DNA from: Vitrella brassicaformis CCMP3155
Lineage: Eukaryota > Protista > Chromerida
Reading direction: 5' to 3'
Length of the DNA stretch: 46,762 nucleotides
NCBI GenBank assembly: GCA_001179505.1
Contig: CDMY01000587.1
Location: 1-46,762, forward strand
Shown: positions 6,663 through 39,120 of the stretch, in pieces
Numbering within the stretch: the stretch's first letter is position 1
Layout: each line of letters begins with the position of its first letter
Translations under genes and position numbers: made by a program
The notes under the pieces: model-generated
Told to the model about the DNA's origin: nothing
The model's database searches: none
Seen by the model: the letters and a program-made list of their open reading frames with translations, nothing else

Positions 6663-8107
6663 TCAGGCGTCAATCGGTATCTGTGTCGCGCCCCGCCACT
6701 TTCCGTCAACTACACCGTCATACTGCGCCTTCACACCCGACTCGCTGTATTTCGCCCCATCAGCAACAACACGATTGCCGTCGCCATCGAAAAACCTCCC
6801 ACCAAACACTATCTGCAGCCGGTGAAGAAAGCGTGTGTCGGTCGTCCGTCTCTCTGCTTTGGTTTGTTCATGCGTGTGAGTGTGTGAATGGCATACCTGT
6901 GGCCATCCGGTGATGAGCTTCAAGACGGCCTGGGGGATGGTGAGGAACTTAACATAACTGCCAGAGCCGCTCACCCGCCGAATGCGTGGCACTAAATAGT
7001 CCGCAACAGTGTCGGGCTCCTCACACAAAGTATTGAAAAACCTGAAAGGGCGACCACAGGCAAGCAGCTAGAGCTGGACAGATGGATGGCTGGAGTGCCT
7101 GCCTTCCCTGTCTAATCCATACCTGCGAAAGGCCGGTGTGGAGTCGGCCAGGAGTAAATCTGTTAGCACCATCCCTGGGCTCAAATTGTGCACGCCTATC
7201 TGACGCAGCCACAGACATGCACGGTCATGCAGACAGGGAGGGACACACAATCGACACTGGGGAGGAGCTGACCTTGTTGTGATTTGCTTCCTTGAGCTCT
7301 TCCCTGATGGAGGCCGATAACTGCGGCATGGCGCGCTTGGAGGCGCCGTATGCAGCGTATCCCTTTGTTGCGCCGCCCTCTACACCTGCACCATCCATGT
7401 TGAAGATATGGCCGCCCTGCTCTTGCCTCGACATGATCTGAAGCCCCACAAGTACACGCCCGCACAACACATCGTCAAGTAAGCAGCCATCCCTGCGTGG
7501 TCCGCACCTCGATTGCCTTCTTGCAGCAGAGAAGGGTGCCGAGAAGGTTCGTGTCCAGCACTTGTTTGAGGTCGTCGGGCGTCAAGTCAGACAGGCGCCG
7601 CCGCTTCCCAGCCACCGTCCCTGCGTTGTTGACCCACACATCAATGTGCCCAAGCTGCTCGACGCAGAAGTCCCCAAGCCTCTCGACGTCTTGAGGGCTC
7701 CCCACGTCACACAGGATGCCCCCCACAGATGCCTTCGCACCGTCATTGGCAACACCAGGATCTCTTCTCAGGGCCTCCACTGCCATCGCCAGGCGGTCAG
7801 CATCACGCCCGCAGACGATCACTCTGTCGCCCTCTCTCAAAAATCTCTGCAATCCATCCATCGCAGACAGCCACTCAAACTGTCATCTGGTGTCCATCTG
7901 TCCCATCTATCCCACCTTTGCCAGGGCGTATCCGACTCCTTTGGTCCCTCCAGTAATGACCACGTTTTTGCTGGTGGTGCTCTGCAGCCTTGAGATCTTT
8001 CTCTCAGCGTGCGGTCTGCGAGCGGCCGTGCTGGGAAAGGACGGGGATGAGTCCGGAAAGCCAGACGCTAAAACAGCCGTGCACAGGTGCACTATTAGGC
8101 TCAACAT
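6663..8107 (-). CDS. NOL: NOL/NYC1-like (chlorophyll b reductase family) short-chain dehydrogenase with bipartite plastid leader
   Basis: TGGTKGVG, NNAG and YGASK SDR motifs. GGHIFNMDGAG, VHNLSPGMVLTDLL and LCEEPDTVADYLVPRIR closely parallel plant NOL. The N-terminus MLSLIVHLCTAVLASGF looks like a signal peptide followed by Phe. Confidence 0.88.
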
Positions 8108-8282
8108 TCACCCTTGCCGATGAAAATTCCTCGGGGTTAGGTGGGTTTGAGTAGGGCTCAGGGTTTACAGAATTGCGAGCTCGACAGAACGTCCTCCTCC
8201 TTCATCTGCATAGGGTTATCGAGGAGGCCCCCTGAGGACGACGAATATCTACGGCGCCGTGAACCTGGCGGCGGTTTGCGAG
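8108..8282. promoter_or_regulatory. Putative bidirectional promoter (175 bp between divergent ATGs) with telomere-repeat-like motifs
   Basis: NOL ATG at 8107(-) and PARP-E2 ATG at 8283(+). Contains ggggttagg, gggtttga, tagggct and agggttta at about 8132-8168. Confidence 0.5.
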
Positions 8283-11200
8283 ATGAGTTCCGAAGCTGAC
8301 TGGGCTTTGCGAGACCTCGAGCGATGGGCGAAGAGCAAGGGCATCCACACGTGAGCACACGCGCGTCTGTGCAGTGCCATTCGCCTGATCTGTATATATG
8401 ATATTCCTACTGTGTGTGCTGTGTGTGTGCGTGTTGGTGTGGTGTCATCTGCAGCCTCGAGGTATTGGAGGTCAATATCGACGGCAGCGCGCAGAACAGT
8501 CAGCCCAGCAGCGTCAAGATACGGTATGCGACCCACACACCACGCTGACATCGGGCACGGTGCTGGTGTGGTCGTGTGATGGTGTCATTCAGGCTGGACA
8601 ATGTCCGTGTCGACATCATCGGGTACGCACACGAGGGCAGGGGAGCGCAGGCAAGGGAGGGGAGGGGAGGGAAGGGGACGAATGGGCAAGGTGTAGGTCA
8701 TAGACACATCCATGCGTTTGTGTGACGATGCTGTCACGGCAGTTTGCAGGGCGGCATGCTCATCAACGTCATTGACGACCACTCCAGTGAGCTCGAGACG
8801 ATGGTCAAGGCGTGCAGCAGCAGGGTACGTACGCACCCACGCCACACGTTGGCAAACAGAATGACAGACTGACAGGAAATACCCAACCAGCCAGCCAAGA
8901 CAAACAACGTCACTAGCTTAGTCTGTGGGTGATGTTCAGGCGATGGAGGGGCGCTACACTGTCAGACGTAAGCTACCGGACACATGCATGTCCTACCGAC
9001 GTCTGTATGCTTCATCCTTCCCTCTGCAGAAGCCTTTGAGGACCTGCTGACTGAGTACAAGGCCACCCTCATGGCCTCACCTGACGGGATACGCCAGGCA
9101 AGCACACAGACACAATGCAGGGGGCGGGCAGGTCAGTCAGGACACTGTGCTCACGCCCCGTTGCGTGTTGATGCGTTGCTTGCTTTGGTTGCTTGGCACC
9201 AGAGGTTCGACGCGTGGAGGCAGGCCAACCTGAGCAAACTCGGCGACAGGGCAGACCACACCGCGTTCATCAGATTCGGTCCGCACAGATACCCACGCAC
9301 CCACCCACCCACACATACATCTTTGGCCCCTCAGATTCCCACGACAACGCGGCGACGGTCGAGTTTCTCGGGTGGCGTGTGTCGCTCGTTGAGACCGAGA
9401 ACACCTACTTCGTCTCAAGCTTCGCCGAGTCCTCAGAGGAGAACATCAACGAATGGATCGTACGTGACGACCACACGGGCACATATGCAATGGTCCGTCC
9501 GTATGGTGTTGTGCTGTTGTGGTGGGGGTGCTCTCAGAATCGCAGCTGTGAGTACGCCTTCCAGGAGGCCAGCGGGCGCACCTTCGAGCAGATACTCGAC
9601 TACCTCCTCAAACACGCACCACACGTACGTAGCTAAGATGGACATACAGAGAGAGAAGGAGAAGGAGAGGGGGGGAGATGGGGTGCTGGTGTGTGCTTCT
9701 TCTTCTTCTCATTCACAGTGTTTGTTGGACGGGGAGGGCGACGCGGCGATGCATGACGACGACTACGGCGAGGATGACGGCGACCAACTCCACTTCTCGA
9801 CGAATTTCCAGACATGGGCGGTGCAAAAGAGGATCCCCGTCGGGTCGCCCCTCCAAAACGAGATCGAGAAACGCGTCCGCGAACCATTCGGTACACTTCA
9901 CATGCACCATGCACCGATACTTATGTTTGTTGTTTGATGCTCATGACGGTGGCGGCGCTGTTGTTGATGCAGGTGGCGTAGACGCGATTCGCGAGGCGTT
10001 CATCTGCAAGGCAGGCAAACCCGTCCCGTCCCATCCCATCCATCCCATCCACGATGGGCCCGGCCCCTACACGCGGATATCCGTGTACTTGTGTATGTAT
10101 TCGTTTAGGAGGTGGAGAGTGGGCGCAGAAAGTGCTGCACCAAGTACGGCGCGGGCAAGGTGGAGATCGGATGTCTGCCCGAGCTCGGATTCGTGCAACT
10201 CGCCATCGACCTCGGTGGGCGGGGGAAGCGGAAACCTAACCGTCTAGACGCCTGCAAGTGCACAGTCATCTCTCTCTCTGCCGTGTTCGTATGGTGTCAG
10301 CTGGGATGGAGACCGACGCGGCGACTCTGAGTCTGATAGGCATCCCCGCCAACACGCCCGTCGTGTGCAGCTTCCTCTTCTCACAGGGGGTACGTGGGGC
10401 GCCCAACCACACTCGCAACCTTTTGCATGGCTCTTCGTTGCCCCTTTCCATCTGTCTGTCTGTCTGTCTGTCTGTGGGTGCGGTCTGTGGTATGGTGTGG
10501 TGTGGCGTGCAGGCGATGAAGGCCCGGTCCTTTACGGACGCGTTTCGCGACTTCAATGCGTCGGACCATTTCTTCGTGTGGCAGAACAAACTCTACGGCA
10601 CAGAGGCCGCTGAAGTGGTGCGTACGTCTGTTCACTTGATCAAACTGCTGCACGTGGCGAATATTTGTGTGCGCCGGTTGTGCACACAGGGCGGTGATTC
10701 CTCACCGCGTGTTGGTGGGGTGGGCAGCAAGGAGCAGAAGGGCTACGGCACCTCGCATATCATCCCCAAGGTCATGACCATCACCATCACCTCACACCAG
10801 GACCATATCAACCAACAAATTGCGTTTGTCTTGTCTGCTCTTTCCTGCGATGGTTGGTTGGTCCGTTGGTGCGTCAGATATTCAAGGGTTTCATCAAGGT
10901 GAGCACTGATGCAAAGCCTCGCTCCCTCCTTGCAATGATGCGTCCGAATGTGTGTGTCCCGTCCCGTGCAGGAGTACATCCCCAAGTCGTCGTGGCGTCC
11001 CCCCCTGCCCCCCCAGGCCTCATCCACCGGCAAGCGCCGTATCGACCACGACAACACGACCACTGCCAGCATGGACGTCGACCCCAAACCCGCGCCGCCC
11101 AAGCCCCATGCCGCCAACCACCAGCAGCACCACTCGCCCCTCGCTCACAAGCCCCTCAAGAGCATCCGGACCAATGGCATGGCAGACCATCACGCCCAGC

Positions 11201-14200
11201 AGCACGCCGGCCATTCAGGCGCCGAGAAGACGCTGTGCGACATGGGCTTCGACATCGCCATGGTCAGGAACGCACTCGCCGCTGCGCAAGGTCAGTTGTT
11301 TTGGCAACTGATAAGGGAGATGGAATCTTTGGGTCTTCCGTGGGTTCGTCCTTGGATGCGTGAGTGCGTGTTGTTCTGTTGGTTGTGTGCAGGCAATGTG
11401 GAGACGGCGGCGGCGTTTCTGCTTGGCGACGAGCAGCCCGCGCAGGTGGCCCACTCCGACGGCGCGGCAGCGTCGGCAGCGTCTGGGGCGGCAAACCAGC
11501 ACCACCAACAACAGCAGCAGCGGAATGGACGACAGGTTGGTGCTGGTGCGGGGCAGGTCGATTGCACAGCACAACACGACACGAAACACGACGACGGCAT
11601 GGATGGCTCCATGTGGGTCCTTCCTTCGTGGCTTCATCTCTTCTCATCCAGAAGGTTGGAACCTCAAGCTCGTCGTCGTCGTCTCGCGTGCGAGGTGTGT
11701 TTGGGGGGCTGTTTGGCGGCCGTGGGTGGGGCGGGGGTGGCGGCAAGGGCGATGCGGGTGATGGTGGCGGGGATGGTGGGGAGGACTATGACGGCACGGG
11801 TGACGTCCTCATGTACCACCACAGGGGGGACGCTGTCAACTTCTTCAGGTGAGGGAGGAGCACGTCCCTGTGAAAGGGTGAATGGGTGAATGGACGAATG
11901 GTGTGTTGGTGGGTGGGTGGTGCAGTGACTTTGTGGAGCACATAGGGAAGTTCTTCGCCAACATCCACAAGTACTGCGTCATCTGCTTCAACCCACACGC
12001 GGTACGACAGAGAGACAGGTGCATCGCACCCACATACTGGCCTTGACGCCTGCCTTGTCGATACATGCGTTTGGCTGGTAGGACGTCCTCTGCCGCAAGC
12101 TCTTCCCCTGCAACAACGTGAGAGAGAGGGGGGGAGAGAGAGAGGAAGAGAGAGAGAGAGCCATCGGTGCCTCCCCTCTCTGTGAATGGATGCTCAAATG
12201 TGTGCTGGTTTTGCAGGAGCTGTGCATCTTTTCGTATGAGGAGTTCGTGGCCACGGTGTACGCCGAGCTGCAGGACGACAAAGACCTCGTCGACCTACAC
12301 GTCCGTCCGTCCGCACACACGCATTCACACATACACATGTGCGAATGTACTTACGTGTGCGCTGTGTGTGGTCTTTGGCTGGGCGGGAGGGAGCAGTTGT
12401 TTCTGGCGGGGTGTGCATGCAACAGCCAAGACACCTACGTGGAGCCATTCCCACCGCACGTACGCACCCATTCCACGCACCTACACCCACACCCACACCC
12501 ATACACGAGTCTATGGATTATGTGCCAGTTCTTGAAGCGCCACGAGATCCGCACCCGATCGGGCATCTACGACAACCGTAAGCACCACACAAGACAAGAC
12601 AACGCATCACATCGCGCGGACTGCACGTACACGCGGGAATGCTATCTGTGCGTGGGTGTGTCTTTGCAGCCAACGCACTCAAATCGGGCACGGCGAGGTA
12701 GGGTGGGCGGTCAGTGCTGCTTTCGTCCACTCATTCATTCATTCATTCATTGTGTCTCTCTGTCTCTGTGCAGGGCAGGGTATGCGTACGGTGGCGGGCA
12801 GCCGCAGAACAACCCCGACAGCAACAAAGACCTCTACAAGTGGGGATCGATCCACACATACACATACACATATATGTATGTATATACATGAACATATACA
12901 TACATACACATATATACAGACACATATACATATACAAGCACGTGTACATGTGATGTGAGTATGGGTCAGGATGAAGCGCTGTTTCCAGAAGCTCCCGTCC
13001 GTCAAGGAGCTGGCAGCGTGCTCATCGGAGGAAGCCATCATCTCACTCCTGCGTACCCAGCCTCACACCCACTCACGCCCACCCGCCCATCCATCCATCC
13101 ATCCATCCATGGGTGCCTGTCTGAATGAATGAATCTGTGAATGGATCATTTCCAGGTCGCGAGGGCAGCGATGAGGACGAGCCCGGTGAGGCGAGCGACC
13201 CGATGCTGCCGTACAAGCTGGTGCAGTTCGTGCTGGCCACCAATCGCATGATCATACGACGAATCGACAACACACCCGAAGCCATTCCTGGGGTGGGCTG
13301 CGTGAGGATGGATGGATGTCACCTTGTTTGACGGTGAACGAACGTGTGTGTCTTATTGTAGTTGAGCAACGTGATGCAGCTGGCGGTGTACAAGAATGCG
13401 CCAGAGAGGGAGGGTACGCACGGAGAAAGAGCCTATGTATCATCTGTCCCTTTGTCACGCCTCTGTCTCCATCGCGTATGGGTGCAGATGCGTTTGCGCA
13501 GCTGAGAGCCGCGTCCGGCCGTGGCAGCGCCTTCGCGTTCCACGGCAGCCCCGCACACAAGTGGTACAGGTACGACCTTGACACACATCCATCCATCCAT
13601 CCATGCACTCGTGAGACATCAGACAGATGTTCGTATGGATGGCTGCAGCATCATGCGCAACGGGATCCGCAACCTGTCCAACACGGCCCTCATGACGGCC
13701 GGCGCCGCGCACGGGGCCGGCGTATACCTGGTACCCACGCACACAGACACAGACAGACAGACAGACAGACAGATGCTGATTGACTGATCCGTGGATGGAT
13801 GGATGGATGGCTGCGTCGTGCTGTTTTGTGCTGTTTTGGGTGTATGTGTTGGGTGCAGTCCAAGAACAAGGAGCTCTCTCTCAGCTACTGCCAGGTTTGT
13901 CCACACGTGTCTTTGACACCATCAACCCATCTATGCATAGGTGCGCTTTTGGATGTAAAATATTGTGTGCAGGGTGCAGGGACGACGGTGTACAACAAGA
14001 GCAAGGCCCGCTCGCGCCTCGTCCTCGGCGTGTACGAGTACATCAACGACGACTCCTGCAGGAAGGTACACATGGGGGCGCACAGGCTCTTTGTACCCAG
14101 CCAGTATGGTTGTCCGCCATGGGTGCACGCACAGGATACTGGCCACCAGATAGTGACGGTGCAGAACGACAAGGCGTTGCTGATGCGCTTCATGTTGATA

Positions 14201-16088
14201 TGGGAGTCGTCCAGCGCCCCCGCATCAGGGGGCTACTACGGCGGCCGGGGCGAGTACGGCAGCCTCACTATCGAGCAGGCCAAAACAGCGTGGGACAAGG
14301 TGCGCATGCGCACAACACAAGAACACAGAGCCGTACCCACTGGCTAGTTGCTGTCTGCTTGTCTGTCTGTCTGTCTGTGCAGTTCCAGGAGCGTATGCAG
14401 CGTGAGGATCGCGAGCGTCAGCAGCAGGAGAGCGTGGCCACGCTCGACCTCTCGTTCGTGCACAAACCCATAGACGAAGACCTGCAGCCGAAAAGGCACG
14501 CACCCGCACAAAAGAAATGCAGACGTATCCACATCCGTCTCTTCTCTGTGGGCAGGAACATCAGCGGCGACCGTCGGAGTGCCAGGCCACCTGGTGAGCA
14601 CATATCCAGACCAACTCACCAATTGCCGCTTTATGCGTCTCTCCTTGTCTCTCTCTGGCCGTGTACCCATGCACCCCCCTGTCAGACCCTGTCCCCCCCT
14701 GTGAGTTTGAGCGTGACCGCCCCTGTCCGTCCCCCGATGCCATGGACGAGGACGACCAGGTGGCAGAGGACGATCAGTTCGAGTTCGAGGACGACGACAA
14801 CGACATGCCCCTCATCGACAACGACTTCGCCAGGCCCGCCGAGACGCAACACGACAAAGAGCAACGGCTCAAGAAACAACTGGTCTGCGGGTGGTCGAAA
14901 ATGAGGGAGGGAGGGAGGGATGGACTCGTGTATGGTGCGGTGTCTTTGGTTGTGTCAGGAGGAGCAGGAGTTGGACAAGCGGATGGAGCAGATCGAGAAT
15001 CGCATGGAGGAGAGCGGCACACTCACCGCCGACAAGGTGAGAGAGAGAGAGAGAGAGAGAGAGGACCGAACACATAGCTATTGCCAGTTTGTTGGCTGCG
15101 CTTCAATGCACTGCAATGTCTTGCATGGCCGCAGGCGTCGAGCGCCGCCACAAGGACGCTGATGAAGGAGTTCCGATCGCTGATGCGCCTCTCACTGACC
15201 AAAGACAAGGGTACGCACGCATGAAGGCATCGGCGCATTGGCACGTCCCTTCGTCCGTCCGTACTTTCGTCTGTGTGCACACTCCACCGAGTTCATGCAG
15301 ATGGCAGCGAGTCTTCGACAGGGTTCGAGGTCACGTTGGTGCGTGAGAACATGTACCACTGGCAGGTCAAGCTCACGGCCGACGGCTTCCCCAACGACGC
15401 CCCACTCAAGAAAGACCTGCTCACCTTCGCAGAGAAAACCAAGAAGGTCAGCCACTCTCCCACTCACCCCGAATGCACCAGGCAGGCACATGCATGAATG
15501 GGTGCTTGGGTGGGTGCAGGAGGCTGCAGTGGTGATGGACGTGCTCTTCCCGGGCAACTTCCCCTTCGCCCCGCCGTTCATTCGCGTCATACGACCGCGA
15601 TTTGTCTTCCACACGGGTAACCCACACGAAGTGTAGTGTTTCGGTGGGTTGGTGCCTGATGGGATGACCATGTATGTGTGCCTGGCATGCAGGTCACATC
15701 ACGGTGGGTGGCAGCATCTGCATGGAGCTGCTGACGCCGTCGGGGTGGCGGCCGACCTACTCGATCGAGTCCGTCCTCATACAAATCAAGAGCGAAGTCA
15801 TCGGTAAGCAAACACGGCACGGGAGAGAATGATCCACCGCTGAGTCTGTCTACACGTCAATGTATGTGTCAATTCATGTATTGCGTGCTTCATCTGCAGA
15901 GGGCGGCGGTCGCATTGACTTCAACCATGTGAGTGAGGTTGTGGGGAGTGACTTGGTGACTGGGTGACTGGTTTGGCGCCCATACGTGCGTTTGTTTTTG
16001 TTTTTCCTTGCAGTGTGGCGACTACACTGACGCTGAAGCGAGGGCCGCGTACGACCGGGTGGCCCGCCAACACGGCTGGATCAAATGA
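8283..16088 (+). CDS. PARP6/8-type ADP-ribosyltransferase fused to UBA and a C-terminal UBE2Q-type E2 (UBC) domain
   Basis: More than 30 hand-spliced exons. UBA: LCDMGFDIAMVRNALAAAQGNVETAAAFLL. PARP6/8-type C4 zinc finger: CVICFNPH-DVLCRKLFPCNN-ELCIFSY, then DLVDL...VEPFP. Catalytic: FAFHGSPAHKW-SIMRNGIRNLSNTALMTAGAAHGAGVYL...QIVTV...MRFMLIW. UBC: NMYHWQVKL...FPGNFPFAPPFIRVIRPRF...HITVGGSICMELLTPSGWRPTYSIESVLIQI. Ends QHGWIK* at 16088. Confidence 0.9.
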
Positions 16089-17042
16089 TCCATGCAACAC
16101 GCATGGACACATACTCACCCACAGAGAACATCCAGACACACATAACACTGCTCTGGGGGCGGGCGGGTGCATGTGTACACAATACAGACGTACAGACATG
16201 ATGATCGCATCGAGAGAGGGAGAGAGCATACATACATATTATATACATACCCATATGCCAACACACCTACGTGAATTCATGCCATCTCCCCCGGACGGAG
16301 AGATGGTTTGAAATTTTGACCCGAGCATCTTTGCATAGATGCATCCACTTGTGCCAATGAATGCATTTTTGCCGGCTGTGTGGGGGAGAGAGATGAGAGA
16401 GATGGCGGTGCAATGTCTGCAGAGCAAAGCGGCGGCTCTAGTAGGGACGGAGAGAGTGAGAGGAGCGAAACGACTGTATGTACCATATACCCAAACCGCC
16501 TGCCTGCCTGCCTGCATACATGACCTGCATACGTGCATGCCTCTCTGCCTCCCGTGTATTTATTTGTGTCCATCGACTGACTGACCGACTTATTTACTCA
16601 ATTTCACGTCCAAGTTTTCCCGCTATCCCCAGCCGCCCGTTCACGTGCGCGTGTCGGTGCCGCTGCCTGGGTGATGGACTCACTCAGTATTACATCTATA
16701 TGTGTCTACATGGACTGATGATCTGGACCACTTGCCTGCCTCCCTGCCGCCCTCTCTCAATCCTCCGTCAACCCACAGAATCCACCGTCTGTCGTGTGCT
16801 GGCAGACTTAGATCAAAGTTACGGAAGCGCAATCGCCAAGGCGCGCTTCTGCTGGAACCTGACGGCGATTCTCTGTCAGTCCTCATCCCCTACTCTGATA
16901 GCATACGTCTGGTGCTCGTGCTTATACCGGACTGCGACAGCACGTGCACACGGTGCACCCAGATATTGTGATTCTGTCAGTGCAGACCGCCGCGGAGCGC
17001 TGTCACACAGTGACGCTCAACAACTCGCTAAGCCTCACAGCT

Positions 17043-35200: not shown

Positions 35201-36838
35201 TCGGTCTCTGTTTATTTGTCTGTCATTCAGGTGGATGGTGTTCGAACAAAGGGATTCAGGCGAGGTTGGCGAGTTGGAATATCCGCCTGCCGTGGTGCCG
35301 TCGTCTCTGCGTGGACATGTCTCTCCCGCCTCGGTGCTTGACCGGGAGGACTCGATGAGGTCCGGGACAGCAGAAGGGCACACGACACGCGGAATAGCTT
35401 GCATTTCTGGAAATGGGAACGAGATCTGGAATGGCCGGCGCCTCCAGGAATGGCTCCGGTTGCCAGCAATGACCTGCCAGCTCTGGCATTGACTGTCCAT
35501 TCCTGGCAGTGCATGTCCATTCCTGGCAGTGCATGGCCATTCCTGGCATTACATGGCCATTCCTGGAAGCGCATGGCCATTCCTGGAAGCGCATGGCCAT
35601 TCCTGGCATTACATGGCCATTCCTGGCATTGACTGAGCATTCCTGGCATTGACTGACCATTCCTGGCTTTGAACGGCCATTCCTGGCATTGACTGACCTT
35701 TCCTGGCAACATTCACCGTCACACCAATCAATCAGTCGATCAATCGATCAATCAATCAATCAATCAGTCAGACAGTCAATGGTACTTGTCAAAAAATCAC
35801 AAACAGCCAAGCACAGACAGACAGCCGCACGCAGAGGCCGTCACTCTCTGGATGAGCCGGGCTGCCCTTTGTGTGGTGGCATGAGGAGTGTGGCTGCATG
35901 GCTGGCTCTGCACAGCTCCCGGAGGCTGTGGTGGAGCTGCCATTTCAGGAGGTTGCCTTTCTGCAAGCGGTGCCGTATATGTATGTGCCAGAGGGTCAGA
36001 TGGATGTTTTCTTTGCTGCAGACAGGTCGAATTCACTCGATGACTACAACTACCATTGACTGTCTGACTGATTGATTGATTGATTGACTGATTGATTGAT
36101 TGATCGACTGATTGATTGGTGTGACGGTGAATGTTGCCAGGAAAGGTCAGTCAATGCCAGGAATGGCCGTTCAAAGCCAGGAATGGTCAGTCAATGCCAG
36201 GAATGGCCGTTCAAAGCCAGGAATGGTCAGTCAATGCCAGGAATGGCCATGTAATGCCAGGAATGGACATGTACTGCCAGGAATGGCCATGTAATGCCAG
36301 GAATGGCCATGTAATGCCAGGAATGGCCATGCGCTTCCAGGAATGGCCATGTAATGCCAGGAATGGCCATGCACTGCCAGGAATGGCCATGCACTGCCAG
36401 GAATGGACAGTCAATGCCAGAGCTGGCAGGTCATTGCTGGCAACCAGAGCCATTCCTGGAGGCGCCGGCCATTCCAGATCTCGTTCCCATTTCCAGAAAT
36501 GCAAGCTATTCCGCGTGTCGTGCATGTGCACCTGCCGCCTCCCTCACCGCCCAGCACTACTGAAGTAATACGAGAGACACAACAAGAGACCTCGGCCGCA
36601 CCCGCAGCATCAGAAAAGAAAGGAAGGCAACAGGGCCTTCTATCGCCGGGCAAGAGGCTGGACACCAAGAAGCTGCTCCATGCCGCCCGGAAGTACGTAC
36701 AGTCAGGTTCGCCAATGAGGCTCTCCATCAACTCTTGAAGGCGGGATGCGTATCAAGTCAGTGCGTGAGCGAGTAGTCTGAGCACTTCATTTTAAAACGC
36801 GAATGCGACATCGGTGTCCAGCTTTGTTCAGTGACCAT
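35201..36838 (+). pseudogene. Diverged duplicate of the giant gene's 3' exon region, interrupted by a foldback element
   Basis: 35201-35370 matches about 33408-33580. 36523-36790 matches about 33581-33830. 36781-36838 matches about 34008-34063. Confidence 0.85.
35381..36522. mobile_element. Foldback-like element: long inverted arms made of 20-bp tandem repeats around a ~266-bp loop
   Basis: The left arm 35381-35784 is the reverse complement of the right arm 36051-36522. There are 11 units (35481-35700) versus 14 units (36141-36420) of consensus GAATGGCCATGTAATGCCAG, plus (TCAA)n/(TTGA)n tracts at the inner ends. Confidence 0.85.
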
Positions 36839-36880: not shown

Positions 36881-38138
36881 CAGTCCAGCCTTAACGCACT
36901 CGATCTGTACATGGTCAAAAACGGGTCGGATAACCGGGTCACCTCCCAAAGAGACTCAAATCAGCCATCCAACCCGACCATTCATGCCTGAAGATGACCG
37001 CAAGACGATGAGAACCTCTCTGTAAAATGCGGACCGATGAAAGAGTCACTTGACGCGTCACAATGCAGTCATTTTGATCTTGTCGTGAACACGTGAGCAT
37101 TCGCTGGTCGCGCTATGAGAATGGTGAAATTTTTCGTACAGTCCGGACCGCGTAAGTGGGTCAGTACAGGGCTGACCCACTTACGTGTGTGACCCGCTTA
37201 TGCGTACGTACAGAGCTGACCCACTTATTTTCCGGCGACTTTTGGAGTGATTTCTCGCTGTAAATGAATCACAGGAGCCTCTCAGAAGCCCGTTGACTCT
37301 TTTTTTCTCGCTCAAAGTCACTCAAAACGACGAAAAACCGTCTGTTCTCTCATTCATTCAATCAGTCCTTGGATGGCTGCGAGAGCCCTTGGATGTCTCC
37401 GAATGTTTGATTCATCGTCGATCTCCACACACGCCACGCAAAGTGATGCAGCCTGAGTGATTTTGCGAGAAGATTCGTCATTGACACATTCACTTGGCGT
37501 CATCAACGGTGTCTGATGGGCCATGACGGCACGAAAGGCATGAACAGCAAGCATAACAGGAAGCAAATCACATAAATGATGCCGCCCCACCGCCTGCAGC
37601 AGTGAATGCATCCGTCGGAATGCACGATGAGTGGGTAGTGGGTGGGCGGATGGGGTGGGTGTGGGTGGGCGGAGGGTGAAGTGATCCATGGAATGACTGA
37701 GGAGGAAGGAAGGCCGAACACATCAGGGCTGAAGAAACGTGTGTTCGGCTGGATGAATGCCGCCAGATGCCTCAGGTGACTCTGTTGACCACCACCTTGT
37801 TTGTCACAAATGGGTGTTCGTGCCTCAAACGTGAAGCAGCTGCTCTTCCGTTTACATCGTGATCAACCTCGCCAAGCAAACTCGCCTTTTTGTCGCCTTG
37901 ATTCGTCTCAGAAGATGACAATCAAAATGTCTGTATTTCTCCATGGAATCATTCTCTCATCGGTCCGCTCTTTCACAGAGGTGTTCTTCATCGTCTTGCG
38001 GTCATTTTGAGCCACGAATGGTCGGCCCGAATGGCTGATTTGAGTCTCTTTGGGAGCTGACCCGGTTATCCGGTCCGTTTTTGACTGTGTACAGAGTGAT
38101 CGGGATGGGCTGACCCACATACGCAATTGACCCGCTTA
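36881..38138. mobile_element. Nested/tail-to-tail non-autonomous DNA-transposon-like repeats with TA|CAG ends and a repeated TGACCCRSTTA motif
   Basis: 36901-37079 is an imperfect inverted copy of 37921-38097. Perfect 14-bp stem at 37151-37164/37172-37185. TA-CAGGGCTGACCCACTTA at 37165 and TA-CAGAGCTGACCCACTTA at 37209. The element runs into the gap. Confidence 0.65.
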
Positions 38139-38438
38139 NNNNNNNNNNNNNNNNNNNNNNNNNNNNNNNNNNNNNNNNNNNNNNNNNNNNNNNNNNNNNN
38201 NNNNNNNNNNNNNNNNNNNNNNNNNNNNNNNNNNNNNNNNNNNNNNNNNNNNNNNNNNNNNNNNNNNNNNNNNNNNNNNNNNNNNNNNNNNNNNNNNNNN
38301 NNNNNNNNNNNNNNNNNNNNNNNNNNNNNNNNNNNNNNNNNNNNNNNNNNNNNNNNNNNNNNNNNNNNNNNNNNNNNNNNNNNNNNNNNNNNNNNNNNNN
38401 NNNNNNNNNNNNNNNNNNNNNNNNNNNNNNNNNNNNNN
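38139..38438. other. Assembly gap (300 N)
   Basis: Run of n characters. Confidence 1.
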
Positions 38439-39120
38439 CCCGCCGTGTCATTATCATCCAGACAGTCAGGGAAGGCAAACACGATAGACAGCCTTTCCTC
38501 TCGCCGCGGCAGCAGGTTCTCCAACCGCCCCCACCTGCACACAAACACGCAGAGAGATAAGCCTGGATGGATGTCTACACCCGTCATCTCTCTCGGTCTG
38601 TCTGACTTACCAGTCACAGACGAGCGGCTCGCCGTTTTCCTGCAGCACCTCCACACCCGCCCGAATGCCGTGGTTCAAGTTCTGCATGCCAGAAAGGTCA
38701 GTCAGAAAGCCAGAGACAGCGTGGCATGTCAATCACACCCGCCTTGAGCACGGAGGGAGTCTTTCGCTGAGCTTACATAGCGCGCGTCCCCCGAGAAGCT
38801 GACTAACGAACGGAGTCTAAAGAGGCAGTCAATGTCGCTGTCGGTCCAGGATGACCGAGCAATCTGAGCAGGGTTCTTGCGCACACCTGCCCAGCCCACA
38901 CAAACGCGCAAAACAGACACGAACGAACAGATGAGAGAGAGGGCCGCCTGCCACTCACACGCAGCGGTGGCTGCTGCTCACCGGTGGGGCAGTCGACGGG
39001 CGAGAAGGTGATAACAGTGCCAGAGAGGAGACCCAGAATGAAGACGTGAGGGCCGTCGGTCATCGGATCGACGTGGGCGTCGAGTTTGAAGAATCGAGAG
39101 TCTGTGTTCAGCAAACTCGA
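38439..39120 (-). CDS. AlkB-family 2OG-Fe(II) dioxygenase, 3' exons only (5' half missing; stop codon in the gap)
   Basis: LDAHVDPMTDGPHVFILGLLSGTVITF (HxD), SDIDCLFRLRSLVSFSGDARY-NLNHGIR (distal His), and PRREERLSIVFAF, joined by canonical minus-strand introns. Confidence 0.75.

Follow-up and report, generated by a model that had tools for sequence, protein, structure and literature searches.

Contig CDMY01000587.1 of the alveolate alga Vitrella brassicaformis CCMP3155 raises the question of whether positions 8283 to 16088 of the 46,762-nt stretch that was analysed (the window) encode a single polypeptide in which a PARP6/8-type ADP-ribosyltransferase (ART) is joined to a UBA domain and to a ubiquitin-conjugating enzyme (E2) domain of the UBC type, as an original prediction made from the sequence alone had proposed. 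Vitrella belongs to the chromerids, free-living algae that form the sister group of Apicomplexa. PARP6/8-type enzymes rank among the most poorly understood PARPs, and to our knowledge no PARP–E2 fusion has been biochemically characterised. Our data suggest that the locus is very probably one transcribed, single-copy gene for a protein of about 1331 residues that carries a UBA, a PARP6/8-type zinc finger and ART, a linker and a UBE2Q-type E2, and that would couple the two modifications as had been proposed.

Gene structure and spliced transcripts

Spliced contigs support the view that the domains belong to one chain. Eight public sequencing runs were found, four of which (X1, X2, X7 and X8) contained 19–35% of the sampled words, as spliced RNA would, and three 97–99%, as genomic DNA would. 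When the contigs of the four runs were mapped to positions 10300–16290, intron-free contigs with GT/GC–AG joints were present in every run, and all exon boundaries between 10972 and 16290 matched spliced contigs. Two long contigs, one from X8 (record 9, 5491 nt) and one from X7 (record 8, 4717 nt), extend without a break from 10972, in the UBA exon, past 16290 and take in the ART exon 14135–14299, every linker exon, every UBC exon and the 3′ untranslated region (UTR), while a contig from X1 (record 3, 1759 nt) joins the ART exon from 14198 to 14299 to the UBC exons and the 3′ UTR. Between the PARP and UBC exons, donor 14300 is spliced to 14383 in X1, X7 and X8. The exons that follow encode an acidic, coiled-coil-like linker (exons 35–38, 14383–15036, residues 1013–1154), whose junctions are all present in contigs of the same three runs and whose 142 codons contain no stop in the ART frame, whereas the other frames of these exons do contain stops. 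The predicted single polypeptide is thereby supported, with contigs bridging all of its parts.

The coding region (8283–16088; this and all features below lie on the plus strand) was assembled by exon chaining, using a three-frame reading of 8000–16600 and the raw sequence with AG acceptors, GT or GC donors and phase, and was corrected by the transcript contigs. It consists of 44 exons with 3996 nt, i.e. 1331 codons and a TGA terminator at 16086–16088, and neither the exons nor the split codons of this chain contain a stop. The ATG is at 8283–8285, and an in-frame stop lies 23 codons before it. The 43 introns are short (56–130 nt, median 85), with AG acceptors and 40 GT and three GC donors, and their GC content is 0.54 compared to 0.61 in exons. 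Of the three GC–AG introns (donors 9098, 10011 and 14496), the one at 14496–14555 is spliced in contigs of X1, X7 and X8; the GC donors 9098 and 10011 come from the model only, and use of GT donors in the same frame at 9134 and 10023 instead would lengthen the coding region by 12 and 4 codons, respectively. The boundaries of exons 1–16 (8283–10898) are modelled, solely from splice signals, the reading frame and the overall length of the contigs. By this length, the X8 contig would extend 101 nt and the X7 contig about 89 nt 5′ of the ATG, in agreement with this part of the model, and contig arithmetic also sets exons 20–27, with 485 nt between 11848 and 13156. Both the ART core exon and the exon with the E2 cysteine have this locus as their only match in the genome.

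The contigs also corrected the ART region, where the original prediction had read 13973–14299 as one exon. This segment is in fact two exons separated by a 69-nt intron (14066–14134), which is in frame and free of stops and was removed in all four runs; if it were retained, the ART would gain 23 residues between the SCRK at the end of a strand and DTGHQIVTV. After its removal, the offset between window and contig stayed constant at +101 nt. A shorter intron of 35 nt within the same region (14066–14100) was rejected, as it breaks the frame.

Some contig joints connect 13809/13811 to 14900–14904 and 11520 to 13790. We regard these as assembly chimeras rather than splicing, because they have non-canonical ends, sides of 20–21 nt, very high depth and simple repeats of the GGATGG/GGGAGG kind. 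Intronic simple repeats of these types lie at 13790–13815 and 14903–14924, where contig depth is in the range of hundreds to thousands and loose ends are frequent, and they account for the spurious joining of the two sites to each other and to 11520. Beyond 16290, the X8 contig runs 1192 nt further and the X7 contig 430 nt, corresponding either to a long 3′ UTR or to a merge with a downstream transcript.

Zinc finger, helical region and ART core

The zinc finger (11975–12225) was read from the translations of exons 20–22 as CVIC, 14 residues, C, NNEL and C. This CX2CX14CX4C arrangement fits the motif CX2CX9-19CX4C, which has been reported for PARP6/8 homologues from all supergroups (Perina et al. 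2014), and agrees with the PARP6/8-like C4 finger that had been predicted. The two introns that interrupt it (12002–12081 and 12118–12216) are spliced out in the contigs. The region between the finger and the ART (12217–13292) appears to be helical and, compared with the published clade 6 alignment, resembles a helical extension (HE); the motif at its end, LVQFVLATNRMII, corresponds to the clade 6 motif LLQWIISSNRSHI of PARP6.

The ART catalytic core (exons 29–34, 13362–14299) was compared with the catalytic sequences of PARP6 and PARP8 given by Citarelli et al. (2010, Additional file 3). The catalytic His of FAFHGS (codon 13541–13543) and the Tyr of GVYL (13725–13727) are where they had been predicted, and a second Tyr follows in SLSYCQ, eleven residues past the first. 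A 45-residue core of human PARP6 (YGSTFAFHGS to GIYLS) can be aligned gap-free with exon 30, the Ser of the split codon and exon 31, with 26 of 45 residues identical (58%). Taken singly, the two exons (13490–13567 and 13650–13730) gave BLOSUM62 local scores of 54 and 75 against this 45-mer, a level reached by none of 5000 shuffles, and both are found within the two top-scoring of the window's 1484 six-frame segments. The next-best scores (36–47), which we attribute to chance, come from low-complexity segments on both strands of 35342–36543, coinciding with a satellite/foldback. The third triad position is assigned to the Ile of HQIVTV (codon 14150–14152), giving an apparent H-Y-I triad as predicted; here, QIVTVQNDKALLMRFMLIWE was set by eye and without gaps against NIWVCPVSDHVCTRFFFVYE of PARP6, which places Ile on Ile with 4 of 20 residues identical.

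The Pfam PARP model (PF00644) found no match in stop-free pieces of the locus or in the single exons, which at 12–55 residues each make this a weak test, and the exon 13650–13730 had no match among solved structures. A longer piece (13784–14344) matched only an adenylate kinase among solved structures, which we judged to be chance. Finally, a search of 1.84 billion representative sequences with the 109-residue piece 13973–14299, a query that included the 23-codon in-frame intron, yielded three hits, all to unrelated proteins (CHU_C/SprB and others), and the ESM Atlas did not recognise the exon either.

E2 domain, UBA and N-terminal region

The UBC domain occupies exons 39–44 (15135–16088), and the predicted likeness to UBE2Q with an intact Cys is borne out by searches against solved structures. 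The exon with the catalytic Cys (GGSICMELL, codon 15719–15721) matches UBE2Q1 (2qgx, E = 2.2e-8) and UBE2Q2 (1zuo, E = 8.3e-8) best, with the Cys aligned, compared to 0.0045 or worse for other E2s, and its context ICMELL...YSIES is identical to UBE2Q1 at 22 of 32 positions. Three successive exons rank UBE2Q1/UBE2Q2 first (E = 2.2e-8, 0.0051 and 0.067), and their matches are colinear along the chain at residues 28–64, 70–92 and 100–131; the first UBC exon and the last exon found no match in the same search. The Pfam model UQ_con matches the Cys exon alone with E = 4.4e-5, below its cut-off. There is no HPN motif 5′ of the Cys (FHTGHITVGGSIC), and a His and a Trp stand close to the C-terminus, in QHGW.

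A UBA had been predicted 5′ of the finger, and a probable domain of this type is found at 11221–11427. Its first half is AEKTLCDMGFDIAMVRNALAAAQ, and its second half, G-NVETAAAFLLG (GNVETAAAFLLG), lies in the next exon. The first half alone matches Pfam UBA with E = 0.0044, or E = 0.84 at genome level, and the UBA of UBAP1 is its only match among solved structures; the second half can be recognised by eye and is too short for detection by Pfam on its own. The domain is thus only half detected because the in-frame intron 11291–11392 splits it, and the exon junction across this intron is present in the contigs.

The region upstream of the UBA is longer than the roughly 230 residues given in the original prediction, with about 415 residues of exons followed by about 80 residues of low complexity. 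Its exons 1–16 (8283–10898, residues 1–415), placed on splice signals and frame, gave no significant Pfam match, and a six-frame search with the Pfam RWD model found no such domain at this locus, the N-terminal region included. Exon 9 (9538–9624) ends in FEQILDYLLKH and shows a weak likeness to the third helix only of Pfam UBA_9 (E = 0.0013, 19 bits against a cut-off of 27), so that the N-terminal region may contain another UBA-like module in degenerate form. Away from the locus, the GC content of the window falls to 0.40 at 38001–39000, compared to about 0.50–0.63 in the rest.

Relation to known PARP–E2 fusions and the favoured reading

To place the Vitrella protein, we compared it with published PARPs and E2s. 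PARP–UBC fusions in non-animal lineages, to which the original prediction had appealed, are on record from fungi, a moss and a green alga: fungal clade 6A PARPs end in a UBCc and have an RWD-like domain at the N-terminus (Citarelli et al. 2010), and PARP6/8 homologues of Physcomitrella and Chlamydomonas carry a UBCc as well (Perina et al. 2014). The fungal protein has been named PARP-Ubc, with its E2 placed in the UBE2Q subfamily and the fusion regarded as fungal (bioRxiv 10.64898/2026.07.25.740670), and the layout modelled for fPARP2 is RWD, C4* finger, HE, ART and E2 (Biochem Soc Trans 2026). Like these, the Vitrella protein has a long N-terminal region, a C4 finger, a putative helical extension, a short ART and a C-terminal UBE2Q-type UBCc with its Cys, and its 1331 residues compare with a fungal mean of 1154 and a maximum of 1324. 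In contrast to the fungal proteins, it has a probable UBA that follows the N-terminal region and precedes the finger, its host is an alveolate alga, its triad is H-Y-I, as in animals, rather than the H-Y-Y of fungal PARP-Ubc (bioRxiv 10.64898/2026.07.25.740670), and an RWD/FPE domain was not detected exon by exon; the likeness to the fungal proteins was assessed by layout. A UBA is found in the PARP6/8 homologues of Acanthamoeba castellanii and Trichomonas vaginalis (Perina et al. 2014), so that UBA and UBCc were described there in separate organisms, whereas Vitrella has both in one protein.

Human PARP6 and PARP8 resemble the Vitrella protein in the ART core, the H-Y-I triad, a finger of the CX2C...CX4C form and a motif of the LLQWIISSNRSHI type, but they have neither UBC nor UBA and keep only non-catalytic RWD domains in their place. 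The Vitrella E2 in turn resembles UBE2Q1 and UBE2Q2 in its Cys context, the absence of HPN and the His and Trp near the C-terminus. Those two are stand-alone E2s with an N-terminal RWD, whereas in Vitrella the E2 core forms the C-terminal part of a PARP. Judged from its sequence, the Vitrella gene is the published PARP-Ubc architecture with a UBA added: the layout is already known, and the host is an alveolate. Our literature search found no paper on the PARPs of chromerids.

Several observations weigh against the reading of the locus as one active fusion gene. No run is registered as RNA, and the evidence consists of assembled contigs rather than single molecules. No Pfam model passes its cut-off on any single exon: the UBA scores 17.3 bits against 22.4, for its first half only, and UQ_con scores 23.5 bits for the Cys exon and 11.6 bits for the preceding exon against 27, again on single exons. 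In a six-frame search of the genome, the Pfam PARP model (PF00644) found 16 matches elsewhere and none at this locus, and no full-length relative was found, word searches with spliced or PARP6 fragments having given nothing. The assignment of the third triad residue depends on the weak by-eye alignment described above. In addition, the critical residues of UBE2Q1 are Y343, H409 and W414, and the Tyr of these YHW determinants is apparently replaced by a His in Vitrella, with a shorter distance between His and Trp.

The use of assembled contigs leaves room for a reading as two neighbouring genes, of which a PARP6/8-like one would stop just past 14299 and a UBE2Q-like one would begin at the MDEDD ATG near 14743, their overlapping transcripts having been merged by the assembler, as a contig spanning two genes would show no single transcript. 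Read-through of donor 14300 does meet a stop at 14345–14347, and the linker exon 14686–14882 does contain an in-frame ATG. However, donor 14300 is joined to 14383 in three runs and four more linker junctions occur in one contig, the linker is open in the ART frame, unlike in its other frames, and the fused layout is the rule among fungal homologues (299 of 322; bioRxiv 10.64898/2026.07.25.740670). We therefore consider two genes very unlikely, because the X8 and X7 contigs are unbroken from the UBA exon to the 3′ UTR. Somewhat less improbable, and still unlikely, is a real fusion in which one module is a pseudo-enzyme, either an ART that only binds NAD+ or ADP-ribose or an E2 core that serves as an RWD/UEV-like binding module. 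This would be in keeping with clade 6 PARPs, which have substituted triads and of which few are proven active, with human PARP6 and PARP8, whose RWD domains are non-catalytic, and with the apparently altered YHW determinants noted above. Against this, the ART retains its His, its two Tyr residues and the glycine-rich surroundings of the NAD+ pocket, and the E2 Cys is kept within a context closely similar to that of UBE2Q1. A single gene with two active modules is thus the explanation that we favour.

In such a protein, the ART would bind NAD+ and transfer single ADP-ribose units, mono-ADP-ribose transfer being expected because an Ile replaces the chain-elongating Glu. The fused E2 would be charged by an E1 with ubiquitin on its Cys, and might discharge it onto hydroxyls rather than lysine, as has been shown for UBE2Q1 and UBE2Q2, which are also without HPN. 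The UBA could keep ubiquitin or a ubiquitylated partner close, and mono-ADP-ribosylation and ubiquitylation would then be coupled on the same targets or on the protein itself. A bolder version, which we regard as a long shot, is that a hydroxyl-directed E2 ubiquitylates the very ADP-ribose that the ART has just attached, so that one protein would write the hybrid ADP-ribose–ubiquitin ester mark (MARUbylation) without a DELTEX-type E3, and the RWD domains of PARP6/8 would be relics of an ancient coupling of this kind. Such a one-protein writer is conceivable because human cells do contain ubiquitin that is ester-linked to mono-ADP-ribose on proteins.

By itself, the Vitrella locus leaves current knowledge unchanged. 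As an expressed example from a chromerid, it widens the PARP–E2 fusion past fungi, moss and green algae, and thereby contradicts the claim that the fusion is specific to fungi (bioRxiv 10.64898/2026.07.25.740670). The gene also lends support to an ancient connection of PARP6/8 with UBE2Q-type E2s. Given the hydroxyl activity of UBE2Q and the ester-linked ubiquitin on mono-ADP-ribose, the PARP–E2 family would be a natural place to seek a writer of this hybrid mark in a single protein.

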